Virus record (IMG/VR): IMGVR_UViG_3300029258_002750 | Span: 186,001-250,000 of that record | Length of the DNA stretch: 64,000 nt | Direction: 5' to 3' (one strand) | Shown here: positions 608-42,596 of the stretch, piece by piece | How positions within the stretch are numbered: position 1 is the stretch's first letter | Layout of the letters: each line of letters opens with the position of its first letter | Position numbers and translations under genes: made by a program | The notes under the pieces: generated by a model | Told to the model about the DNA's origin: nothing | Databases searched by the model: none | What the model saw: only the letters and a program-made list of their open reading frames with translations

Positions 608-1092
608 TGGTCCCGTACGGTCTGGCAGAAGGAGCGCTCATCTACGCGGCCGATGGTTCGATCATCATGCCAACGTCGATCGAGAAGCTCGCCAAGACCG
701 GGGAGCAGCCCGAGGTTCTCGCCTACCACAAGAAGAAGGACAGGATCGTCAAGGTTGTGGCGCAGTACCCACGGATGGCCAGTACCGAGGCCGAGATCGT
801 GGAGGTGACCCTCTTCAACATGCACAAGCTCCGATGCACGCCGAACCACAAGGTGCTCACGACGGTTGGCCTCATCGAAGCCAGGGACCTGAGGACGGGC
901 GACAAGCTCGTTAGTCCGTCTGCCGGAGCGGGCATTCCCGGCCAGTTCATGTTCACCGCCAACAGGGCCAATCGCGTGGCGGTCGCGGGCGACCCTGTCC
1001 CAGCTGGAAAAGCGCGTGTGTTCGACATCACCACCACGACGGGCAACTTCGTTTGCGAGGGTATCGTCGTCTGCGGCAAGGATGCGAAGTGA
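607..1092 (+). CDS. Free-standing Hint (intein-like) domain protein, splicing residues degenerate
   Basis: GTG at 607 overlaps the upstream TAG. Block A-like GLAEGALIYAADGS, block B LRCTPNHKVLT, blocks F/G VFDITTTTGNFVCEGIVVCG. Has G where Cys1 is expected and CG where His-Asn is expected. Confidence 0.8.
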   Translation: MVPYGLAEGALIYAADGSIIMPTSIEKLAKTGEQPEVLAYHKKKDRIVKVVAQYPRMASTEAEIVEVTLFNMHKLRCTPNHKVLTTVGLIEARDLRTGDKLVSPSAGAGIPGQFMFTANRANRVAVAGDPVPAGKARVFDITTTTGNFVCEGIVVCGKDAK

Positions 1093-1826
1093 GCATTGCG
1101 GGCGACACGGTTATCCACACCCTCACCGGCCCGCAAACCGTCACTCGCATCGCCAACACCGACAAGGCTGTTCACGTCTTCGCCTGGAACGGGGCGAAGA
1201 TCGCGGGCGGCCGGATCTACATTCCGCCGACACCGTGCCGCGCTCAGACGTATCGCGTCGTCCTCGACAACGGCCGCAGCTTGCGGGTCAGCGCCGACCA
1301 GCGCTTCCTGGTATTCACCAAGAGCGAACCGAAGGGCGTTGAGACCGTTCAGGCGATAGACCTCAAGCCGGGCACGAGCCTGCTCCCCCTCTACCTCGGT
1401 CGTATCAAGCAAGGTGGCTATCCGACCTTCAAGCAGGTGGGCGATCATTGGAAGCGATCGGCGTGCGCCAGCGACCGGAAAAGATGGCGGAGCGTCGCTC
1501 GAATGGTGTATGAATGGGCCTCTGGCGACGCTCTCGTTCCTGGGCTTCGGGTGAAGCACAAGGACGGCAATCCTGACAACTGCCACCCCAAGAATCTCTA
1601 CATCGACGGGACCCCACGGCCGGGGAACCGCAGCAAGCTCAATCGTCTTCTCGATCTCCAGAGGAAGATCATGCCAGGCAACCACAAGGTCGCCGGTTGC
1701 GAACCCTGGATCGAAGAGGAAGATGTATACGACGTCCTTCCACAAGACTGCTCGAGCGTTGCGGCGACCGAGGTCTTCTTGGGGGTCGGCGAGGAGACTG
1801 GAGGACTAGATGGCCCTCCGCGATAG
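1089..1826 (+). CDS. Free-standing intein-like protein (Hint + HNH endonuclease domain), splicing residues degenerate
   Basis: GTG at 1089 (GTGA overlap). Block A MSIAGDTVIHTLTG, degenerate block B LRVSADQRF, LKPGTSLLPLY, HNH-like ARMVYEW...VKHKDGNPDNCHPKNL, block F NHKVAGCEPWIEEEDVYDV. No terminal HN. Confidence 0.75.
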   Translation: MSIAGDTVIHTLTGPQTVTRIANTDKAVHVFAWNGAKIAGGRIYIPPTPCRAQTYRVVLDNGRSLRVSADQRFLVFTKSEPKGVETVQAIDLKPGTSLLPLYLGRIKQGGYPTFKQVGDHWKRSACASDRKRWRSVARMVYEWASGDALVPGLRVKHKDGNPDNCHPKNLYIDGTPRPGNRSKLNRLLDLQRKIMPGNHKVAGCEPWIEEEDVYDVLPQDCSSVAATEVFLGVGEETGGLDGPPR

Positions 1827-3711
1827 GGCGGTCAAGGCGCTCCGAAACGTGTTCGGCGCTCCTCAAGCGGAGCGCGCCAAAGCCGACTCGCCCTCGGTCG
1901 CGGCGATGCGGCATCACGTGCCCAGCATGTTCACGGTCTGGGGACGCGAGGACATCGGCGGCCTGCTCACCGTCTCCCAGTCCCTCATGGATCGGTTCGC
2001 CGACTACGAGGCGATGGAGGAGTACCCAGACATCAACTCGGCCTTCCACTACTTCGCTAATGACGCGACTCAGCCCTCGGTCAAGGACGGCCGATGCATC
2101 TGGGTCCAGTCGGAGGACAGTGCGATCAAGGGCCTGGGCGACGACCTGATGCATCGGACGCTGCGGGTCGAGGATGAGATCTGGCCGCAGGCGTACGGTC
2201 TCGGGATGATGGGCAACGACTATCTCGAGCTGCTCATCACCGAGAACGGCGTCGTCGGGACCAACACGCTCCCCGTGCCCACGATGAGGCGCGTCGAGCG
2301 GCTTGACGGCGGCCTGATCGGCTTCGTACAGGACGTGACCGGCCAGTTCACCGCGAACAGCCAAGAGCTGCGGCGGATGCTCGCAGGCAATGTCGAGATC
2401 CCCAGGAGCCTCGCCCTGTTCGAGGACTGGCAGGTCGCCCACTTCCGACTGCGCGCGACGCGGCGGCGCATTCCCTACGGCGTCTCCGTCGCCGAGGGCG
2501 CCCGTTGGATCTGGAAGCGCCTGGTGATGCTCGAGGACAGCGTGCTGATCTACAAGCTCACACGCGCGCCAGCTCGCTACGCCTACTACATCGACACGAC
2601 GGACGTGCCATCCGATCAGGTCGGGTCGTTCCTCCAGAAGGCGAAGAGGGACCTCAAGAAGAAGCGGATGGTCAACCCCCGCTCCGGTCGCCTGGATCTC
2701 CGCTACAACCCGCTGGCGAGAGACGAGGACTTCTTCATCGCCGTTCGCGAGGGCCGCGAGCTGGCCCGGGTGGACGTCCTCTCCGGTCCCGACTACCAGG
2801 CTGTCGATGACGTGGAGTACTTCAAGCAGATGCTCCATGCGACGCTGAAGGTCCCGCGCGCCTACCTCGGCAAGGACGAGGCTCCGCCGTCGAAGTCGAT
2901 CCTCTCGAACGACGACGTGCGGGCGGCCAGGGTGACCTTGAACCTCCAGCGCGAGCTGAAGATCGGCTGGGAGCGGATCATCCGCACGCACCTGGCCGCG
3001 CGAGGCGTGCGCGATCCCTGGAAGCCCGAGTTCACGATCGAGATGACCATTCCTTCGGGGATCTGGGAGCTGTCGGCCTACGAGACCCTCAATGCGGCGG
3101 CCGACTATGCGAGCCGGATCCAGCCGTGGGTCAGTACCCGCTGGATTCAGGAGAAGATCCTCAAGTTCTCGGAGGAGGAGATCAAGGAGATCGAGAAGCA
3201 GCAGAAGAAGGACTCCGAAGAAGAGCAGTCCGGCGACCTGCCCAGCTATGCGATGGGCGGTGCCCAGGGAGGTCCGCCGGAGGCTCCGCCACCTGGCGGG
3301 GAGGAAGAGCCCGAGGAACCCGCGCCCGAGGAGAAGGAGGGCGAGGAGGAAGAGGGGACTCCCAAGCCGAAGCCTGCGCCCAAGCCTGCGCCGAAGCCCA
3401 GGGCTCCTGCGGTCGGGAAGTCGAAGAAGGCGACGCCGGAGGAGATGAAGCGGTGGGACTATGAGCGGCGGCTCGAGGAGTGGAAGTACAGGGAGTCGAA
3501 CCGGCGGCACGCCGAGATCATGGACAAGCTCGGCCAGCTGACAAAGGATGATCCGGGCTTCGCCAGGCGCGATCGGGAGCGCCGTGCGTTCTTCGAGGAC
3601 GTGCGCGGCCTACTCCGGCGAACCAACGGCGGCGGCATCGCTGTACCGCCTGGGGGGAAGTTCTCCCGGAAGGAGCTGCTCTCGATGTCCCGAAGATTCC
3701 ACGGCCGGTAG
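1810..3711 (+). CDS. Portal protein (T4 gp20-like)
   Basis: gp20-family motifs DYEAMEEYPDINSA, LEDSVLIYKLTRAPARYAYYID, YNPLARDEDFFIAVREG. GGAGG RBS. Position before core, protease and capsid genes. Confidence 0.93.
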   Translation: MALRDRAVKALRNVFGAPQAERAKADSPSVAAMRHHVPSMFTVWGREDIGGLLTVSQSLMDRFADYEAMEEYPDINSAFHYFANDATQPSVKDGRCIWVQSEDSAIKGLGDDLMHRTLRVEDEIWPQAYGLGMMGNDYLELLITENGVVGTNTLPVPTMRRVERLDGGLIGFVQDVTGQFTANSQELRRMLAGNVEIPRSLALFEDWQVAHFRLRATRRRIPYGVSVAEGARWIWKRLVMLEDSVLIYKLTRAPARYAYYIDTTDVPSDQVGSFLQKAKRDLKKKRMVNPRSGRLDLRYNPLARDEDFFIAVREGRELARVDVLSGPDYQAVDDVEYFKQMLHATLKVPRAYLGKDEAPPSKSILSNDDVRAARVTLNLQRELKIGWERIIRTHLAARGVRDPWKPEFTIEMTIPSGIWELSAYETLNAAADYASRIQPWVSTRWIQEKILKFSEEEIKEIEKQQKKDSEEEQSGDLPSYAMGGAQGGPPEAPPPGGEEEPEEPAPEEKEGEEEEGTPKPKPAPKPAPKPRAPAVGKSKKATPEEMKRWDYERRLEEWKYRESNRRHAEIMDKLGQLTKDDPGFARRDRERRAFFEDVRGLLRRTNGGGIAVPPGGKFSRKELLSMSRRFHGR

Positions 3712-10240: not shown

Positions 10241-10278
10241 GGAGGGGCGACGGTTTCGGCCGTCGCCCCTTCTGCTTG
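10241..10278 (+). terminator. Stem-loop with UUCG loop after the capsid gene
   Basis: GGAGGGGCGACGGT-TTCG-GCCGTCGCCCCTTC (14 bp, two G-U pairs) followed by a weak U tract (TGCTT). Confidence 0.7.
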
Positions 10279-10304
10279 TGAAGCGTCGAGCGCCGATCTA
10301 TATT
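10276..10304 (+). promoter_or_regulatory. sigma70-type promoter for the HNH gene (TTGTGA-N17-TATATT)
   Basis: Near-consensus hexamers, 17-nt spacer, GGAGG RBS and GTG start downstream. Confidence 0.6.
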
Positions 10305-10322
10305 AGTTGGTGGAGGTTCGCT

Positions 10323-11429
10323 GTGCCCACCAACTACCCCAAGTTCTCGCCGCGCGACCTGGAGCGATGGAACCAGAAGATCGAGCCCTCGGCCGTAGAC
10401 CGGCTTGCCGCTCCAGACGCCTGCGTCCTGTGGACGGCGAGCAAGAACGCGCGCGGCTATGGCGTCTTCAGGCTGGACAACCGCTCTCTGCTCGCCCACC
10501 GGGTGGCCTATGTACAGGCGAACGGTCAGATCCCGGACGGCGCGCTCGTGCGGCACACATGCGACGACCCGGCCTGCGTGAACCCACGACACCTGGTTCT
10601 CGGCACGCCAGCTGACAACTCGGCCGACATGGTTGAGCGCGGCCGATTCGCGGACCAGAGTGGGGAGAAGAACGGTCGCGCCAAACTCGACTGGGCGAAG
10701 GTGGACGAGATCCGCGCCCGGCTGGAAGCGGGGGAGTCCCAACGGGCACTGGCCGAGGAGTTCGGCGTCAGCCAGCCTCACCTGTCGGACATCAAGCTGG
10801 GACGGACCTGGCAGCGGCAGGACGTACCAGTGGTGCCGAAGAAGGCGCGATCGGATCGCGGGAAGAGGAGACGCGGCAGGAGCAGTCCGATCGAGGCAGA
10901 TGAGAAGACAACCAGGCGCTTCTGGAAGAAGGTCGCCAAGGCCGGACCCGACGACTGCTGGGAGTGGCAGGCCGCGAAGGACAGCTCGGGCTACGGCGCC
11001 TTCAACATCTGCGGCCGGGTCCGGGGCGCCCACCTGGTCTCCTACCTGATCGCCAACGGCAAGATGGCTGAGAACGACGTCGCCCACACCTGCGCGAACC
11101 GCGCCTGCGTGAACCCAGCTCACCTGAAGGACACGACCCGCACCAGCAACATGCAGAACCCGGAGACCCGCCGCCGGATCTCGAAGAAGGCGCGCGGCGG
11201 CCGGAGGAACACGAAGCTGACGGACGAGCAGATCAGGTTCGTCAAAGAACGGTTCAGGGACGACAAGCTACTCTCAGCTCGTAAGCTCGCCGACGAGCTG
11301 GGCAACGTGGTCACGCCCGAGTGCCTGGCCAACATCCGCAAGGGCAAGACCGGCCGCCACGTGAAGGTCCCTGGGTTCAGGGCGCGGAAGGTGACTCCGA
11401 AGCGGGCGGCGGCGATGAGGGCTTGTTAG
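10323..11429 (+). CDS. Free-standing homing endonuclease with two tandem HNH + HTH units
   Basis: Two CxxW...GYGxF...AHxVxY...HTCxNxxCVNPxHL units, each followed by a KLxxxxVxxIR HTH-like segment. GTG start at 10323 after GGAGG. Confidence 0.9.
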   Translation: MPTNYPKFSPRDLERWNQKIEPSAVDRLAAPDACVLWTASKNARGYGVFRLDNRSLLAHRVAYVQANGQIPDGALVRHTCDDPACVNPRHLVLGTPADNSADMVERGRFADQSGEKNGRAKLDWAKVDEIRARLEAGESQRALAEEFGVSQPHLSDIKLGRTWQRQDVPVVPKKARSDRGKRRRGRSSPIEADEKTTRRFWKKVAKAGPDDCWEWQAAKDSSGYGAFNICGRVRGAHLVSYLIANGKMAENDVAHTCANRACVNPAHLKDTTRTSNMQNPETRRRISKKARGGRRNTKLTDEQIRFVKERFRDDKLLSARKLADELGNVVTPECLANIRKGKTGRHVKVPGFRARKVTPKRAAAMRAC

Positions 11430-30977: not shown

Positions 30978-32497
30978 TGGGCGACGGGCGCTACAACCCG
31001 CTTTCCGGCGCCGAAGGTACAGGTGACTTCTTCGCGCCGTTCTTCACGTTGAAGTTCCTCACCGTGGAGCAGCTCGAGGGGAACGTCAACGTCGATGGCG
31101 AGCAGGTTGGCAACAACGAGCGTCAGCCCATTGAGGAGTCCAAGGGCCAGACGAGCAGCGGTGACATCACGCTCGAGTTCGACTACAGCAGTTGGCTGCG
31201 GAGCTTTTCCCCATCGATCGAGATCAGGCTCGAGGGCGGCGGCTTCGCCGAGGCGACGGTGACGCTCGAGCCGCCGTTCGCCGACGCGGTCAAGATCGTC
31301 GATGACCGCGCGATCCAGAGGAACGGCGTCATGGTGATCGAGTGGGGCTGGCTGCCGAGCACGCCCACCGCGAAGAAGCTCACCAGCGACAAGCACATCT
31401 TCATGATCACGAAGCCGGGTCTCGATATGTCGGGCACCGACATTCGGGTGACAATCCACGGCACGGACCTCCTCAGCGGCAGCGGAATTGCCAGGCAGGC
31501 GAAGACAAGCTACGCGAGGAACTCGGGAGCTGCTGCTAGGGCTGAGGAGAACGGGACGTTCGCTACCGATCTAGCCGTTCTCGAACACCTCGCCAGGAAG
31601 ACCAACCTGGAGCTGGATGTATCGCAGGTCGGCGCTGACTCGCCGCTCCGCCAACAGAGGCCGCTCAACAAGGAGGAGCCGGAGGTACTCGAGCAGAACT
31701 CTAGTGACTGGCTCTTCTTCAAGGAGCTGTGCGATACGAACCGCTGCTCGTTCTTCGTGCTCGGTGACAAGGTGATCGTGGGCGACATGAACACGATCAA
31801 GAAGGTGGACGCGTCCTACAACCTGCTGTTCATGCAGGCGCCCGAGAACGACCGCGACATCCCGATGGAGGCGTTCTCGACGAGGGCGCTGGAGACCTTG
31901 TTCTCGACTCCGGCCGGTCGAGGCATGACGCACTCGTACGCCGACCCGGATACGGGAGAGGTCACTACACTGGTGCTCGATCCACTAGACATGGCGGACG
32001 AGGAGCACACCGGCCAGCTGAATGCGGCCGGTGCGAGGAACGCAGATGGAACCACCTACCAGGTAGATCAGCAGGGGACAGCGGTTACCCCGAATCCGGC
32101 CATGACGGGGAACACGGTCGGTACGCACAAATCAAACTCTAATGCTATCCCGAACCGCGATGAGCACGCCAAAAAGCCTGTCCGGGACGGGAACACCTGG
32201 ATGAACACGGAGGCAACGGCCACGGTCCTCGGTCACCCGGATCTGGTGCCGATGATGATCGTGCGCGTGCTGTGCGGTAGCGAGACGTTCAGCGGTGCCT
32301 ACCGGATCATCGAGGTGACGCACCGGATCGGGATGGACGGCTACTCCACTGATCTGAAGCTGAAACGAGAGTCCTCGAGCGGTGACAAGAACACCGGAAC
32401 AGGGAAGGTTCCGATCACGGGCGGGCAGGATCCTCCCACGAGGGAGGGCGGGGGCGAGGCTGTAGACCCGGAGCCGCAGGAAAGGGTCGACAGCTGA
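30977..32497 (+). CDS. Baseplate hub protein (gp27/gpD-like)
   Basis: Position before the spike. QNSSDWLFFKEL and ATVLGHPDLVPMMIVRV...FSGAYRIIEVTHRIGMDGYST hub-type motifs. Confidence 0.7.
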   Translation: MGDGRYNPLSGAEGTGDFFAPFFTLKFLTVEQLEGNVNVDGEQVGNNERQPIEESKGQTSSGDITLEFDYSSWLRSFSPSIEIRLEGGGFAEATVTLEPPFADAVKIVDDRAIQRNGVMVIEWGWLPSTPTAKKLTSDKHIFMITKPGLDMSGTDIRVTIHGTDLLSGSGIARQAKTSYARNSGAAARAEENGTFATDLAVLEHLARKTNLELDVSQVGADSPLRQQRPLNKEEPEVLEQNSSDWLFFKELCDTNRCSFFVLGDKVIVGDMNTIKKVDASYNLLFMQAPENDRDIPMEAFSTRALETLFSTPAGRGMTHSYADPDTGEVTTLVLDPLDMADEEHTGQLNAAGARNADGTTYQVDQQGTAVTPNPAMTGNTVGTHKSNSNAIPNRDEHAKKPVRDGNTWMNTEATATVLGHPDLVPMMIVRVLCGSETFSGAYRIIEVTHRIGMDGYSTDLKLKRESSSGDKNTGTGKVPITGGQDPPTREGGGEAVDPEPQERVDS

Positions 32498-33789
32498 TGA
32501 GTCCCTTCTTCCGATTCGTGAAGAACATCCGAGATCGCGGCCTGGAGTACGTCACAGGCAGGCACTACTCGAAGTATCAGGGGACCGTCGTCGACAACGA
32601 GGATCCGCAGGGCCAGGGCCGAGTCAGGGTCAGCTGCGAGTCGGTGACCGGCCGCAAGGGTGAGCTGAGTATCTGGGCCTACCCCAGCTCGGACTTCGCT
32701 GGGCCGGACAAGGGTATCTTCTTCCCCCCGAACAAGGACGACAAGGTCTGGGTCTGGTTCGACTACGGCGACCTCCGTGTGCCGAGGTTCTCCGGGTCCT
32801 GGTGGGGGAACAGGGACCAGGACAAGGGCGCGAACGGCGCCCAGGTGCCGAAGGAGTTCGCGACCGAGGGCGGCGAGCCCACGAAGCGCGGTATCAAGAC
32901 GAAGGCGGGTCTCGGACTCCTGTTCGAGGACAAGGCTGGCGAGCAGAAGGTCCAGGTCTGGACCGGCGCCCAGGGAGAGGCGGGAACCGAGGCCGAGAAG
33001 CACCACCAGATGACCCTCTCCGACAAGAGCGGGGAGGAGCAGATCGTTATCGCGTCGTTCGGGGGGCGTCAGTCCAGTTGGATCGACATCTCCGGCCAGG
33101 AGGCGATCGAGCACAGGTCCGCGAACGACCACTTCATCAAGATCAGCGACGCCCAGGACAACATCGTCCTCCAGCTCGCGAACGGGAACACGATCAAGAT
33201 CGAGACGAACCCCAGCAAGATCACCGTGCAGACGACCGGCCAGCAGAAGGCCGAGTTCTTCGACTCGCCTGCCTCGATCAACGTGCAGGACGCGAACGGG
33301 AACATCGTCAACATGGGTCCGACCGGCGTGAACGTCAATGCAGCCGCGCTGGTGAACGTGGTGGCCGGAACGACCGCGAACGTCACGGCTGGCGGGGCTG
33401 CGACCGTGACGGCCGCCGGTCTCCTGACGCTCGCCGGTAACGGTCTGACGATGCAGAGCACGGGGTCAGCGCCGACCCAGATCACAGGCGGCGGGGTCGC
33501 GAATGAGACGTTCGCCGGGGCCAAGACGTCGCAGGATGGGGGCTCGATCCACACGTCCACAGGCCCGTGGCGGGTGACTGGCGCAGGGGTCGAGCTGATC
33601 TCGGCCCTCGGGTCCTCGACCTGCTTCGTGGGCGCGAACGGGGTCAAGTACCGGCTCGTCGATGAGCGGTTCTTGGTCTGGGCCGAGAACCACACGCATC
33701 TGCTCGGCTTCAGCGGTGCGCCGACTGGCAAGCCGATCCAGCCGGTCATACCGAACCTCATGGCTACCGACGCGCTGAGGGGGAACTGA
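32497..33789 (+). CDS. Baseplate spike (gp5/VgrG OB-fold + beta-helix)
   Basis: YQGTVVDNEDPQGQGRVRV...WAYP...GIFFPPNKDDKVWVWFDYGDLRVPRFSGSW. Beta-strand repeats and terminal NHTH. Confidence 0.88.
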   Translation: MSPFFRFVKNIRDRGLEYVTGRHYSKYQGTVVDNEDPQGQGRVRVSCESVTGRKGELSIWAYPSSDFAGPDKGIFFPPNKDDKVWVWFDYGDLRVPRFSGSWWGNRDQDKGANGAQVPKEFATEGGEPTKRGIKTKAGLGLLFEDKAGEQKVQVWTGAQGEAGTEAEKHHQMTLSDKSGEEQIVIASFGGRQSSWIDISGQEAIEHRSANDHFIKISDAQDNIVLQLANGNTIKIETNPSKITVQTTGQQKAEFFDSPASINVQDANGNIVNMGPTGVNVNAAALVNVVAGTTANVTAGGAATVTAAGLLTLAGNGLTMQSTGSAPTQITGGGVANETFAGAKTSQDGGSIHTSTGPWRVTGAGVELISALGSSTCFVGANGVKYRLVDERFLVWAENHTHLLGFSGAPTGKPIQPVIPNLMATDALRGN

Positions 33790-36781: not shown

Positions 36782-37711
36782 ATGGGCAAGCCGTCGAGAA
36801 TCGGTTACGGCCACAACCCCTTCGGGCATCCGCACGGCGGCGCCTTGTTCAGCGTCCCCGGCGGCGGCCCGTACTCGGTCAATGCTGGGTTCGGCCGAGG
36901 CGACTGGGCCGAGGAGGTCACCTGGCGGATCCTCCCCGACGACACGCGGGATGAGGACGGGCTCGGCAGCGACGTTCCAGAGCCGCTCCGGGGGATCATT
37001 GAGGCCGTCAAGCCGCTCCTGAACGAGCTGCTCGCCAAGTGGGCGATCTTCCCGAGCTTGTGGGACGCGGTCACCTGTCCGATCGACCAGCTGCCGATGC
37101 TGGCCTACAACGTGGGGATCACGCTCGATCCCACGAAGAACGAGCGGCTTCAGCGCTCGGAGGTGCTCAACGCTCCCCAGCTGTTCCTGCACAAGGGAAC
37201 CGACCTGGGCTACACGATCCTCGCTGCCTTCGAGGATCTCCTGGTCGAGATCATTCCGCTCTGGGCCGAGAGCGCCGACCCCAGCGCCGCACTGACCCCG
37301 GTCGACCCGACCGTGTTTATCCCGTACTACAACAGCGAGGTCACCGACGTGGTGCCCCTCGACGCGGAGTACGACGACCGCTTCGCGCTGTGGCCCAAGT
37401 ACCTGGGTGTCAAGGACGAGAAGCGGTCCCACTTCCTGCGGCTGATCTTCTATCCGACAGATGACCCTTCGCAGGACTTCGACCCCGATGTGGCCGCGCG
37501 TCTGGCCGAGCGGCTGCTGCGGTTTAAGCCGATCTACGTGGAGATCGACAGGATCGTGTTCGACGGCCTACGCGGGTCGAGTCAGACGTGGACACAGAGC
37601 ATCGAGGCTGGCGACCACGCCGCCGGAATGTGGATGAATGGCCCAATCGTCGCGATGTTGACCGCAGCCAGCCAGACGTGGACCGGCGCTGTCGTGGCGG
37701 ACACGGTATGA
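36782..37711 (+). CDS. Baseplate/tail protein (P2 gpI or gp7-like)
   Basis: CPIDQLPMLAYNVGI...QLFLHKGTDLGY, follows the baseplate J-like gene. Confidence 0.65.
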   Translation: MGKPSRIGYGHNPFGHPHGGALFSVPGGGPYSVNAGFGRGDWAEEVTWRILPDDTRDEDGLGSDVPEPLRGIIEAVKPLLNELLAKWAIFPSLWDAVTCPIDQLPMLAYNVGITLDPTKNERLQRSEVLNAPQLFLHKGTDLGYTILAAFEDLLVEIIPLWAESADPSAALTPVDPTVFIPYYNSEVTDVVPLDAEYDDRFALWPKYLGVKDEKRSHFLRLIFYPTDDPSQDFDPDVAARLAERLLRFKPIYVEIDRIVFDGLRGSSQTWTQSIEAGDHAAGMWMNGPIVAMLTAASQTWTGAVVADTV

Positions 37712-37905
37712 GCGAGCTGACGATGGCGAGGATGGAATACGCCAAGCGAGTTGCCCCATTCGTGTCAACGAGCTGGCTCGCAAAGACGATTCTCGATCTC
37801 AGCGAAGATGAATACCAGGCGCTCAGGCGCAAGGTGATCTACGAGACGCTCTACGAAGAGAGCGCAGTTGACCTGCTCGGCGCTCTCGCGGAGAGGAAGA
37901 GCTAG
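37708..37905 (+). CDS. 65-aa protein homologous to the portal C-terminal (crown) helices
   Basis: EYAKRVAPFVSTSWLAKTILDLSEDEYQAL vs portal DYASRIQPWVSTRWIQEKILKFSEEEIKEI: 13/30 identical by manual alignment. ATGA and TAGATG coupling. Confidence 0.7.
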   Translation: MSELTMARMEYAKRVAPFVSTSWLAKTILDLSEDEYQALRRKVIYETLYEESAVDLLGALAERKS

Positions 37906-39309
37906 ATGGCGAAGGCGCTAGCGTTCAGGCGAGACACCAGCACGGTCGTCACGATCGACACCATCAACAACGTCGTGGCCGACGTTGGAATCGCGATTCC
38001 CGGAGCGCTCACGACGACGGTGTTTCCGGGGCGTACCAGGAACAACATCGCCGTCTACAACGGCGATCCCTACCTGCTCTACATCCACTCGTCAGGCGAG
38101 GCCCGTGTCGCGGTATACCAGAGCGGCTCGTGGTCCGACGTTCCATCGGCCGCTTTCCCTCCTGTGTCGGGAACCGTCGTTCCGATCAGCCTGGAGGTCG
38201 TCCAAGACTACCTCGTGATGAGCGTGTGGCGGCAGAACTCCGCCAGCGTGGATGGTCTGATCGTGAAGCGGACGGCCGATGGCTCGACGTGGGACGCGCC
38301 GGTGGCACTCGGCGCCCCTGTGCAGCCCACGGTCTCGGAGGGCTGCGCCTCGATCGCCTGGCGACAGGTCATGTGGTACGCCACGGCGAGCGGGATCGCC
38401 TACTACAACCCGATCACCAACACGATGTCGGCCGCCTTCGATGACGGGGACGACGGCAACCTCGACGGTCCAGAGGTGCCCGTCGGCTCGTTCGCGTTCT
38501 GGAACAACAACCTCTACGTCCTGAAGCCTGGGACAGCCCTGTCCCTCTACCAGCTCGACACCGCGTGGCAGCCGACAGCGCCAACCGCCCCGCCCTCGTG
38601 GACCAAGCTCTCGGCTACCGGCATCCCGAGCTTGGGATCGCTCACGATCGTACCGGACACGCCACCTGCGCTGCTCTTCGTCAACAGGGTCGATGAGTTG
38701 TGCATCCTCTACTCGGCCGCGCTTGGCTCGAAGCTCGTCAAGACGGACGCGGCGGCCTTCCCAGTCTTCGCCTTCACGGACGTGACGACCAGCCTGCTAC
38801 CCTCGGCCATCCAGGGCATCTCGGACGGCGGCTTCACGCTCTACCAGGACGACCGGCGACGGGTCAACGAGGTTCAGAACATCCTGATTCACAGTAGCTC
38901 CACCACCCAGCTGGCTACGTGGGATGGCGTGTCGGAGATCAACGTCCGAACGACATTCTCCCATCGGGTCATGCCGCCCGATGAGCGGTTTGGCGCGCTG
39001 CGGACGTTCACGAACCTCCAGCCGACGACTTCGATTACTGGCGTCGCGCAACCGTGGGACGGTCGCGTCGTGATCGACTACGACGTCAGAGATGCCAGTT
39101 CGCGGCCGGTGGACATCTTCGGCGAGTACTCGGTCGATGGCGACGAGTGGTCGCCGATGACCCAGGGCGACGGGGATGACGGCAACGAGCAGCTCGCGAC
39201 AACCCCGGCAGGCAGCAGCTACCAGTTCTACTGGGACGCCTGGGCCGACCTGACCGGCACGTACCCCAACATGAACATGCGGATCGTCTCCCGGATCTCC
39301 GGGGTCTAG
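37906..39309 (+). CDS. Hypothetical beta-rich structural protein
   Basis: 467-aa ORF rich in W/Y beta-strand motifs, in the baseplate/fibre region. Confidence 0.65.
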   Translation: MAKALAFRRDTSTVVTIDTINNVVADVGIAIPGALTTTVFPGRTRNNIAVYNGDPYLLYIHSSGEARVAVYQSGSWSDVPSAAFPPVSGTVVPISLEVVQDYLVMSVWRQNSASVDGLIVKRTADGSTWDAPVALGAPVQPTVSEGCASIAWRQVMWYATASGIAYYNPITNTMSAAFDDGDDGNLDGPEVPVGSFAFWNNNLYVLKPGTALSLYQLDTAWQPTAPTAPPSWTKLSATGIPSLGSLTIVPDTPPALLFVNRVDELCILYSAALGSKLVKTDAAAFPVFAFTDVTTSLLPSAIQGISDGGFTLYQDDRRRVNEVQNILIHSSSTTQLATWDGVSEINVRTTFSHRVMPPDERFGALRTFTNLQPTTSITGVAQPWDGRVVIDYDVRDASSRPVDIFGEYSVDGDEWSPMTQGDGDDGNEQLATTPAGSSYQFYWDAWADLTGTYPNMNMRIVSRISGV

Positions 39310-40129: not shown

Positions 40130-40401
40130 CGACGGTCAGGCGCGTCTACACTTTCGGATGGGATGGACCTCCGCCCTCAGGCGAGGAGGACGAGCCCACG
40201 TTCGTCTTTACCGGCGGCTGGTTCGGACAGTCGTACGACATTCCGCTCATCGAACCGCTGGATCCATCGATCGTGGCTCACGAGCAGAAGATCACCGGCC
40301 AGCTGACGACGTTCTTCGCACAGGGCACAGGCTCGACGATCAGTCCCGGCACCAGGGGCGTGGAGAGCGGAGACGCGAGGGTTGGTGAGGTGGTGCTGTA
40401 G
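40126..40401 (+). CDS. Hypothetical protein
   Basis: 91 aa, GTGA coupled. Confidence 0.55.
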   Translation: MTTVRRVYTFGWDGPPPSGEEDEPTFVFTGGWFGQSYDIPLIEPLDPSIVAHEQKITGQLTTFFAQGTGSTISPGTRGVESGDARVGEVVL

Positions 40402-42596
40402 TGGCTGTCTTCCCGACGAGCACGATCAACAAGCAGAACGTGAAGTTCCGGTACGGGGAGCAGTACGTCTCGGAGGCCGCGAACCGGAAATTCCTCGCGA
40501 TCCCGAGAGGCGTCTACTACGGCTTCATCCCCACGTTCGAGAACGACGTGCTGACCCTCGCGCCGGACCCGACCTACGGAGTCTCTCAGGCTCGGCTCAC
40601 GTCGTCCGACGATCCGCTGATCGCGCTCGATGTCGTGACCACTGAGTCGATCACGCTTGACTTCACCGGTCACTCGAGCTACCCGGTGAACGTGGTCCTC
40701 AAGGCCAACGGGGCGCTGGGGCTGGCGCACTCAGCCCAGGTCTTCACCAAGGTCGGGGCCGCGACTGATCCGACCGAGCTGCTGCTCGGCGAGGTCACGG
40801 CCGCGAACACGATCGACGTGACGCTGCCCGCCAAGAGGAGCAACCCCTACGCCTACGCCGGGGCGCCTCTCGGCTACGGCTTCATGCCCTCGGGGTCGGT
40901 CGAGGATCTCATCGCCGCCGTCTCCCTGGTGCAGGAGGTCGAGAACGCCAGAACCGATCTGACTGGCTTCACGCACCCGACCCTGCGTGAGCGGCTCGAC
41001 GCCGACGCCACTGGTCCGGCCATCGCCGAGCGGCTGGGGAAAGAGCTGCGGACGATTGTCAGCGAGGACATCACGCTGCCGTCTGCGCCTACCGGCAGTA
41101 TCAACGTGAGCCGGTCGTTCTCGGCCCTCTACCGATCGTCCTCGCCTGTCGAGAACATCCCCGGGTTCGCCTCCGAGGACCGCAACGGTGCGATCACGGG
41201 TGGAACACTCCCAGTTCTGGTGCCGCCGGGTGCGCTGTCTGACTCGGAGCGCAACGTCTGCATGGTTATCGATACCTCGACCGAGCGCCGGATCCAGAAC
41301 ACTGCCAAGGTGGCGGCCTACGGGCGGCTGACGCTCTCCGAGGTCGTGCTCACGGGCACGCTCACGTTCGTGGCCGCAAGCGATCGGGTCAGCGGAGCTG
41401 GAACCGACTTCCCGAACCAGGTAGAGGTTGGGGACATCGTCCAAGATACGGCCGATGACTACTACGAGGTGACCGCGATTCCCCAGACCGTGACAGGCGA
41501 GCTGCTCGCGACGATCGGCGGCTCACCCGCTCCGCACGATCTCTCGACGACTCCGCTCTCGAACCCAACGGCGATCATCCCCGGCTCCGTCTCGATCGAC
41601 GTCGTGGTGGACGGTGTAGGGTCCGACGTCATCATCGACGACGGGGCCGGGAACCTCACGAGCGCCGCGCTGACCGCACCCGGGACGATCAATTACACGA
41701 CCGGGGCAATGACCGGAGTCACGGTCAACCTCCAGGCGGCCTCGCTGGTCCAGGCCAACTACACCACGGTGACCAACGAGATCCAGATCTCGACGCCAGC
41801 TGCCACCCCCGGCTCGTCGGCTACATTGCTGAGGCGGCGGTTCACTCTCTCCTTCTACGTTCGCACCGGCATCGGAGCCGAGTCCGGCCTGGCGCTCGAC
41901 GGCGGCCCGACGCTTCGGTTCTTCTTCCCGCTCTGGGACACGATGGAGACGTCGCAGTTCGACTACCTGCCGTACCTCTTCAGGAACGCGGACGCCGAGC
42001 CGGTGATCGACGCGACGACCGTGATCTCAGGCCGCGCGCTGGTAGCCGCCAACGCGGGTGATGGGAAGGCCGGGGCCATCAACGAGATTCAGGACACGGG
42101 GAACCCGCTGCCGGACGGCTTCTACCACACGCTCAACTTCAACGGCGCATCCGATGGCGGGAGCGGCGTTGCCAACATCACGCAGCGAGGGCCGACCGGG
42201 CCAACAGGGCCAGACGCATCTGGCGGGCCGGTCGGACCAACTGGTCCGAAGGGCGATCAGGGACCCGGCTTCGAGCGATCGTCCGGCGACAACCCTGGAA
42301 CCTATCCGATCGTAGAGACATTCAACGTACCCCAGGGCTACTTTGGGTATACGCCAGGGACGACCTGGACCGACACGCACGACTTCAGTGCCACTCACAG
42401 CATCTCGGAGATCTTGTTCGGAACGACGGGGCTCTCGAAGTGGAACCCGAACGACGACCATGGGGACGACCGCTGGCAGATCGAGCTGCTCGAGAAGATC
42501 TCGGCTACGACGTTGCGGGTGACCGGCTATGTGCCGCTCGGCAACCCGGATGTCGCCGGTATCCGATTCCTCTTCAACGCTGCGGGGCTTGACTGA
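40401..42596 (+). CDS. Tail fibre-like protein, paralogue 1 (short collagen stalk)
   Basis: Shares GVYxGFxP, GFMP, ERLxAD...RLG, RRxTL, RFxFP and HTxNF motifs with the next two genes. GPTGPT triplets at 42189-42269. Confidence 0.75.
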   Translation: MAVFPTSTINKQNVKFRYGEQYVSEAANRKFLAIPRGVYYGFIPTFENDVLTLAPDPTYGVSQARLTSSDDPLIALDVVTTESITLDFTGHSSYPVNVVLKANGALGLAHSAQVFTKVGAATDPTELLLGEVTAANTIDVTLPAKRSNPYAYAGAPLGYGFMPSGSVEDLIAAVSLVQEVENARTDLTGFTHPTLRERLDADATGPAIAERLGKELRTIVSEDITLPSAPTGSINVSRSFSALYRSSSPVENIPGFASEDRNGAITGGTLPVLVPPGALSDSERNVCMVIDTSTERRIQNTAKVAAYGRLTLSEVVLTGTLTFVAASDRVSGAGTDFPNQVEVGDIVQDTADDYYEVTAIPQTVTGELLATIGGSPAPHDLSTTPLSNPTAIIPGSVSIDVVVDGVGSDVIIDDGAGNLTSAALTAPGTINYTTGAMTGVTVNLQAASLVQANYTTVTNEIQISTPAATPGSSATLLRRRFTLSFYVRTGIGAESGLALDGGPTLRFFFPLWDTMETSQFDYLPYLFRNADAEPVIDATTVISGRALVAANAGDGKAGAINEIQDTGNPLPDGFYHTLNFNGASDGGSGVANITQRGPTGPTGPDASGGPVGPTGPKGDQGPGFERSSGDNPGTYPIVETFNVPQGYFGYTPGTTWTDTHDFSATHSISEILFGTTGLSKWNPNDDHGDDRWQIELLEKISATTLRVTGYVPLGNPDVAGIRFLFNAAGLD

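Follow-up and report, generated by a model that had tools for sequence, protein, structure and literature searches.

A small accessory protein in the baseplate operon of an uncultured phage is a diverged copy of the portal crown helices and ends in a helix tag found throughout the phage

The window analyzed here is a stretch of 64,000 nucleotides, positions 186001-250000 of a 275,101-bp viral record with direct terminal repeats (the phage genome, G000). The DNA is about 65% G+C and occurs in sediment and seawater metagenomes. The portal's best match in a collection of cultured phages is 31% identical, and there is no DNA match in that collection. The head genes are T4-like while the baseplate genes are P2-like. 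Within the baseplate operon lies a small ORF whose ATG overlaps the TGA of the upstream gene (ATGA at 37708-37711) and whose TAG (37903-37905) abuts the ATG of the next gene at 37906. All translations used genetic code 11. The features that concern us are as follows.

1810..3711 (+), portal gene (633 aa, T4 gp20 type; Pfam PF07230 Portal_T4, E 4.9e-51; PDB 3JA7/6UZC, E about 4e-23), in which a long acidic, proline-rich and then basic extension follows the crown
3082..3201 (+), portal residues 425-464, the crown helices that the small ORF resembles
36782..37711 (+), upstream baseplate gene (P2 gpI-like, 309 aa; Pfam Tail_P2_I, E 5e-7)
37708..37905 (+), small accessory ORF, 65 aa plus stop, predicted to form four helices (3-15, 21-27, 33-47 and 53-64)
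37714..37833 (+), portal-crown-like segment of the small ORF (residues 3-42, helices 1-3)
37861..37887 (+), C-terminal tag SAVDLLGAL of the small ORF (residues 52-60, in helix 4), which ends 5 aa before the stop
37906..39309 (+), downstream 467-aa gene with no Pfam family, probably a peripheral baseplate or fibre protein, whose Shine-Dalgarno-like GGAGAGGAAG (37890-37899) lies inside the end of the small ORF
37708..37906 (no strand), presence/absence polymorphism, 199 nt that in a close strain are replaced by a 14-nt spacer (GTAGGAGGCCAAGG)

Upstream of the small ORF lie the Tail_P2_I-like gene and a baseplate-wedge (J-like) gene. In an orthologous locus from a related phage (L022) the order is Phage_base_V, GPW_gp25, a J-like wedge protein, a 327-aa protein, Tail_P2_I, the small ORF, a 467-aa protein and a large fibre-like protein of about 730 aa. 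The window's 731-aa copy of this last protein has collagen-like Gly-X-Y repeats.

An earlier note, made from the sequence alone, had described the small ORF as a stand-alone copy of the portal crown helices with 13/30 identity to a portal segment 35 kb away, with codon usage unlike its flanks and tight coupling on both sides. We found that every part of this observation holds. BLASTP of the small protein against the 633-aa portal gives exactly 13/30 identities, residues 3-32 against 425-454, with E 3e-6. To determine if this pair had simply been picked from many, we conducted a six-frame search of the whole 275-kb genome with the 65-aa protein and found only the protein itself and the portal (E 2.9e-6 per genome, residues 6-50). 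The codon usage does differ from the flanks, with a GC3 of 0.77 against 0.85-0.88 and a CAI-like index of 0.52 against 0.69-0.72, lower than 99% of 65-codon windows of neighbouring genes. The note also considered the ORF likely to be expressed. Since no RNA sequencing run was found to hold this DNA, expression and translation remain inferred from the junctions.

We next asked if the portal segment is the crown. The portal aligns to T4 gp20 (3JA7, 6UZC) over residues 237-474, which puts portal residues 425-464 at about gp20 461-500, and the segment as a whole aligns at about residues 461-510. The gp20 crown is residues 451-524 and is made of three helices, alpha10-12 (PMC4493910). A profile of the three small-ORF orthologues was then searched against nine related phage records. 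The portal crown was the best non-self hit in 9 of 9, always at profile positions 3-42, with E-values from 7e-8 to 1e-2 per genome. In profile-profile comparison, hhalign gave 96.3% probability with four portals and 97.0% (E 1e-10, 40 columns, 3-42 against portal 425-464) with twelve. A score that rises as data are added is what homology predicts.

To further examine the assignment, an AlphaFold2 model was made without templates from a two-sequence alignment (mean pLDDT 70). Its top PDB hits are T4 gp20 chains, and model residues 1-48 superpose on gp20 459-510 with Z 5.1 and rmsd 2.0 A over 48 residues. The model is of medium confidence, none of these hits is significant on its own and a Z-score of 5.1 would be unremarkable alone for a small helical protein; its weight comes from hitting the same residues that the sequence route predicts. 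BFVD top hits are likewise enriched in portals, and of the 30 nearest named ESM Atlas clusters 14 are Portal_T4, at scores of 0.95-0.96.

The earlier note had proposed a profile search as the test that could refute the portal link, and we conducted one exhaustively with HMMER against 1.84 billion representative proteins. This returned only three orthologue clusters and one 135-aa protein (E 6e-4) that passes Pfam Portal_T4 in its own right, as a C-terminal piece. No full-length portal reached significance at that library size. A word-index search of 5.8 billion proteins found only the query itself, the cultured-phage collection holds neither a DNA nor a protein relative, and the small-ORF profile did not reach T4 gp20 or any other portal in a PDB sequence search. 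A further hit from a pattern scan, at locus L004, is a chance LSEDEYQA word inside a primase-helicase. The small protein has no Pfam or PHROG portal hit, falls below every Pfam threshold and, at 65 aa, lacks the clip, stem and wing of a portal protein. It also has a fourth helix that no portal has.

These data leave room for the view that the similarity is chance or convergence of amphipathic helices. Only 30-40 residues are aligned, and at the DNA level the aligned 120 nt are 49% identical, with 11 of the 15 identical residues using different codons and both conserved serines in different codon families. However, nine independent genome searches point to the same portal segment in the same register, the template-free model maps to the same gp20 residues, and the best non-orthologue among 1.84 billion proteins is a portal piece. 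We therefore consider chance or convergence very unlikely and take homology as established with high confidence, on per-genome and profile-level significance and not on a database-wide hit. The small protein is about equally far from every portal of the clade (12-16 of 40 identities), so no donor portal stands out, and it is no closer to its own portal than to those of relatives. This suggests that it is not a recent duplicate of the resident portal gene but an old fragment that has evolved fast, or one that came from elsewhere.

To determine if the ORF is conserved we compared the same slot in related loci. Three orthologues occupy it, in L006/L007 (61 aa) and L022 (54 aa), with the same ATGA and TAGATG junctions and with indels of 12 and 33 nt that are in frame. 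The orthologues are 49-72% identical while the two flanking proteins are 83-91% identical. Between the window and L006, dN is 0.41 and dS 0.82 (ratio 0.50), whereas the flanks have dN 0.05-0.07 and ratios of 0.12-0.14, so that the ORF evolves about eight times faster in dN than its neighbours. A dN/dS of 0.5 on about 40 synonymous sites also fits weak constraint. The orthologue in L022 lacks most of helix 1, which indicates that the complete crown fold is not required.

In contrast, three more distant relatives (loci L009, L010 and L011) go directly from the gpI-like gene to the next gene. A contig of sequencing run X8, from a sediment strain about 90-93% identical in the flanks, bridges 37707 to 37907 through the 14-nt spacer, which carries a stop and a GGAGG site, and runs X5 and X7 show the same loose end. 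The 199-nt unit is thus a presence/absence polymorphism with gene-exact borders, which excludes a core structural role in the P2 V-W-J-I module; the downstream 467-aa gene is conserved in all relatives whether or not they carry the small ORF. We found no promoter-like site in the stretch scanned, and the four terminator-like sites lie away from the ORF's ends (nearest at 37299-37313 and 38047-38067). No Rfam family reaches significance. The ORF is therefore an accessory gene, recently gained or easily lost, although ages and the direction of change are inferred from a few genomes, most of them fragments.

The position and translational coupling of the ORF, and the use of the same slot in three phages, could suggest a small assembly chaperone or adaptor for the neighbouring gpI-like or 467-aa proteins. 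However, relatives with the same two neighbours at 61-93% identity lack it entirely, it matches no tail-chaperone family, it evolves far faster than its neighbours and it carries the tag of a non-structural small-protein class described below. We consider this role unlikely. Phage morons are likewise gene-sized insertions between conserved late genes, with deviating composition and present in some strains only, but here there is no promoter or terminator of its own and no intergenic space on either side.

Weak profile hits of positions 48-65 to other ORFs of the genome led us to search for a motif, a feature the earlier note did not see. We found that the last helix, SAVDLLGAL, is one instance of S-A-[IV]-[DE]-x-L-[GA]-x-[LIV]. 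A strict pattern has 45 ORF hits in the genome and 0 in a reversed-translation control, and a broad pattern has 90 against 3. Of the 90, 53 lie within 10 aa of a stop and 66 within 30 aa, so that the motif ends about 60-66 otherwise unrelated small ORFs. The carriers have a median of about 120 codons, and most are packed in arrays at 100-140 kb on the minus strand and 140-180 kb on the plus strand, where almost every consecutive gene ends in the motif. Their N-terminal bodies show no similarity to one another, and Pfam and PHROG searches with ten of them found nothing. An ESM Atlas search with residues 41-65 of the small ORF was uninformative.

We tested whether a promoter, terminator or recombination site might explain the motif. 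Information lies at codon positions 1 and 2 and third codon positions carry little, serine is encoded by both TCN and AGY codons, and every extra hit of a DNA matrix translates to a D-to-E or similar conservative variant of the same peptide. The constraint therefore acts on the peptide, not the DNA. In 17 orthologue pairs between G000 and its close relative G001, tag identity is 87.6% against 63.4% for the rest of the protein (p = 2e-10). In the small ORF's own orthologues the tag is invariant except for one V/I change. G001 is equally rich in tags, two further related records (G003 and G005) carry variants, and a distant relative of 35% G+C (G004) shows none in 52 kb. A degenerate DNA pattern for the tag gave one hit among 2.9 million viral contigs, in the same clade, and was too specific to be informative.

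The strongest tag in any large protein is in the PolA DNA polymerase. It lies inside a 25-aa loop insertion that the G004 polymerase lacks, and a second insertion carries AVDALAWL. A tag-like helix in the portal's C-terminal extension (EIMDKLGQL) is not conserved in relatives and we treat it as coincidence. The small ORF shares with the tagged class a fast-evolving ORFan body and a conserved tag near the stop, but differs in two respects. It is the only tagged ORF that resembles part of a large protein of the genome, and it is the only one in the late structural region, at genome position 223.7 kb, whereas all other near-stop tags lie at 0-180 kb. It may therefore not share their timing or fate. 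The T4 late promoter TATAAATA is absent from the genome and gave no basis for inferring gene timing.

The tag argues against the possibility that the ORF is a nearly neutral passenger, kept because an open frame would keep ribosomes flowing between two coupled late genes. Weak codon adaptation, lower GC3, high dN and dS, the presence/absence polymorphism and variable length in the orthologues would fit such a passenger. However, the downstream gene has its own strong Shine-Dalgarno-like site with or without the ORF, residues of helices 2-4 and above all the tag are conserved while the rest diverges, dN/dS is below 1 and tags are selected genome-wide. We consider this reading unlikely, though somewhat less so than a baseplate role.

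The product is a chimera, in which helices 1-3 are an old, much diverged copy of the three-helix crown of a T4-type portal of this phage clade and helix 4 is the phage's own C-terminal tag, a short capped amphipathic helix with the motif (E-P)-S-A-[IV]-[DE]-x-L-[GA]-x-[LIV]. The P-S-x-x-D/E residues form a helix-capping box followed by an amphipathic turn, which reads as a short docking helix. An L-x-E-P is frequent just upstream of the tag. In this view the tag would be the working end, docking the protein onto one common receptor or site that would also receive the 60 or more other tagged small proteins and probably the PolA polymerase, while the crown-like helices would be a re-used helical module supplying the specific surface, which may or may not still recognise what a portal crown recognises. 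The protein would be translated by coupling within the late baseplate operon. The analysis itself establishes the homology to the crown, the tag and its selection at the protein level, the accessory status, and fast evolution with the frame kept open; docking by the tag (drawn from the motif's position, shape and conservation), the identity of any receptor, expression and any effect on portals are inferences. We hold this reading with moderate confidence, on a family of only three orthologue clusters.

The interpretation in the earlier note is thus supported only in part. The stand-alone crown copy and the conservation of the ORF are supported, and of its three functional ideas a re-used helical module fits best, while a packaging regulator or a dominant-negative mimic acting on competing phages or satellites is not shown. 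Such a mimic would bind portal subunits, or the crown's normal partner, and poison or tune portal-ring or prohead assembly of the phage itself, of co-infecting relatives or of satellites, and the tag could add recruitment to a common machine. The true homology to the crown, the most internal, ring-forming part of the portal, and the accessory, polymorphic and fast-evolving nature of the gene, as expected for conflict genes, would fit this, as would its about equal similarity to all portals of the clade, so that it is not tuned only to its own portal. However, no positive evidence of binding was obtained. A complex prediction of the small ORF with the portal crown segment (alignments A4 and A5) gave ipSAE 0.13 and 0.10 without controls, which is evidence neither for nor against binding. 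One orthologue lost most of helix 1, the orthologues are less portal-like (7-11 of 40 identities) than the window copy, and the most conserved residues lie in the tag. A strong dominant negative co-expressed with the phage's own late genes would also harm the phage itself. Portal mimicry is neither shown nor excluded, and we consider it unlikely.

MicroProteins, single-domain copies that titrate their multi-domain parent such as plant LITTLE ZIPPER and animal Id proteins, are likewise short proteins made only of an oligomerisation-type module of a larger protein from the same genome lineage. Binding to the parent is their defining property, and they are described in eukaryotes and not known from phages. 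Portal crowns are known only as parts of portals. A free, polymorphic, fast-evolving crown copy would be a natural probe for what the crown binds during head assembly, and a possible case of a phage microprotein.

Short conserved peptides at the ends of many otherwise unrelated proteins are the hallmark of a common receptor, as with the T4 capsid targeting sequence of internal proteins (PMC3012670, PMC9026906). Encapsulin cargo-loading peptides and bacterial beta-clamp-binding motifs are of this kind as well. The tag matches none of these in sequence: the T4 sequence is N-terminal, encapsulin peptides are GSL-rich, and clamp motifs are QL[SD]LF- or QLxLxL-like (Dalrymple et al. 2001), whereas the tag consensus has no conserved Q or F and a different leucine spacing. 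The number of carriers is also far larger, about 60-90 in one phage. Roughly a quarter of this jumbo phage's genes end in the same selected peptide, which implies one common reader for a whole class of phage "dark matter" proteins. Finding the reader would assign a shared cell-biological fate to dozens of ORFans at once and would give a transferable tag for an uncultured phage lineage.

A more far-reaching possibility, which we regard as doubtful but not excluded, is that the C-terminal helix is a previously undescribed phage-wide sorting or docking signal that would send about 60-90 ORFan proteins and, through a loop insertion, the PolA polymerase to one hub. Candidate hubs are the phage's own beta clamp or replication site, or the prohead interior for co-injection. 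The small ORF would then be a crown decoy delivered by the tag, bringing a portal-type surface to that hub or bringing portals of competitors to it. The phage encodes a bacterial-type beta clamp (genome positions 31955-33064), DnaB, a primase and RecA, which makes a replisome hub one candidate reader even though the tag does not match the clamp-binding consensus. A near-tag is also present in an HNH endonuclease encoded in the window.

A selected C-terminal peptide, S-A-[IV]-[DE]-x-L-[GA]-x-[LIV], was found across the whole genome of this phage (G000), mainly at 100-180 kb, which lies outside the window. We found that this peptide ends about 60-66 otherwise unrelated small ORFs, and that these ORFs are arranged in divergent arrays in which almost every gene carries it. 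The peptide is also abundant in the relative G001 and is present in two further related phage records, G003 and G005. Within the window the peptide is found at 37861-37887, and a near-match is found in the ORF at 10278-11426. Other features observed in the window are as follows.

1053-1826 (+), ORF just upstream of the portal
3220-3711, portal residues 471-633, the part of the portal that follows the crown
10278-11426 (+), free-standing HNH homing endonuclease
40401-42596 (+), downstream 731-aa protein

The ORF at 10278-11426 encodes a free-standing HNH homing endonuclease, with two HNH_3 stretches plus HTH domains, and lies inside the head-gene region. Its near-tag, EPSAVDRLAAP, is located at residues 36-45. 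A further instance of the tag was found in the PolA-type DNA polymerase (G000:40799-43636, loci L071 and L078), which carries an exact tag (SAVDQLGDL) in a 25-aa loop insertion of its exonuclease domain as well as a second, tag-like AVDALAWL insertion. In contrast, both are missing in the polymerase of the tag-less relative G004. The polymerase gene also seems to hold a mini-intein at about residues 477-610. We found that the phage encodes a bacterial-type three-domain beta clamp (G000:31955-33064) together with the PolA polymerase, and that genes at 2-95 kb also encode DnaB, a primase, RecA, a class II ribonucleotide reductase, a Ro60/TROVE protein, a MoxR-like AAA with a VWA/metallopeptidase partner, and CobT-like VWA proteins.

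The portal reading frames of relatives (G001:105627-108866, G003:26511-29960, G005 near 6.2 kb, and the related phage record G009 near 9.1 kb) are 1016-1591 codons long, with large insertions that split the match to the 633-aa portal of this window. These insertions are most likely inteins, and the window's portal is free of them. The ORF at 1053-1826 has weak HNH_3 and intein-splicing matches, and is possibly an intein or homing-endonuclease remnant next to the packaging genes. After the crown the portal continues for about 160 residues, first as an acidic, proline-rich linker and then as a basic helical tail. This layout is conserved in relatives, though the sequence is not.

A stand-alone portal piece was also found on an unrelated low-GC Logan contig (L023:2360-2767), which encodes a 135-aa protein (P0005) that passes Pfam Portal_T4 with only a wing stretch and the crown helices. 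This gene lies next to a tmRNA gene and an M24 peptidase, with no other portal part nearby. It is a second, independent mini-portal piece, which is either real or a decayed gene. In the ESM Atlas we found that clusters of 48-70-aa proteins with 50 or more members carry Portal_T4, and BFVD holds "portal" entries of 71-124 aa. These may be truncated gene calls at contig ends, or they may represent a wider class of free crown pieces. Lastly, the downstream 731-aa protein encoded at 40401-42596 has collagen-like Gly-X-Y repeats (GPTGPTGP...GPKGDQGPG) and is probably a fibre.
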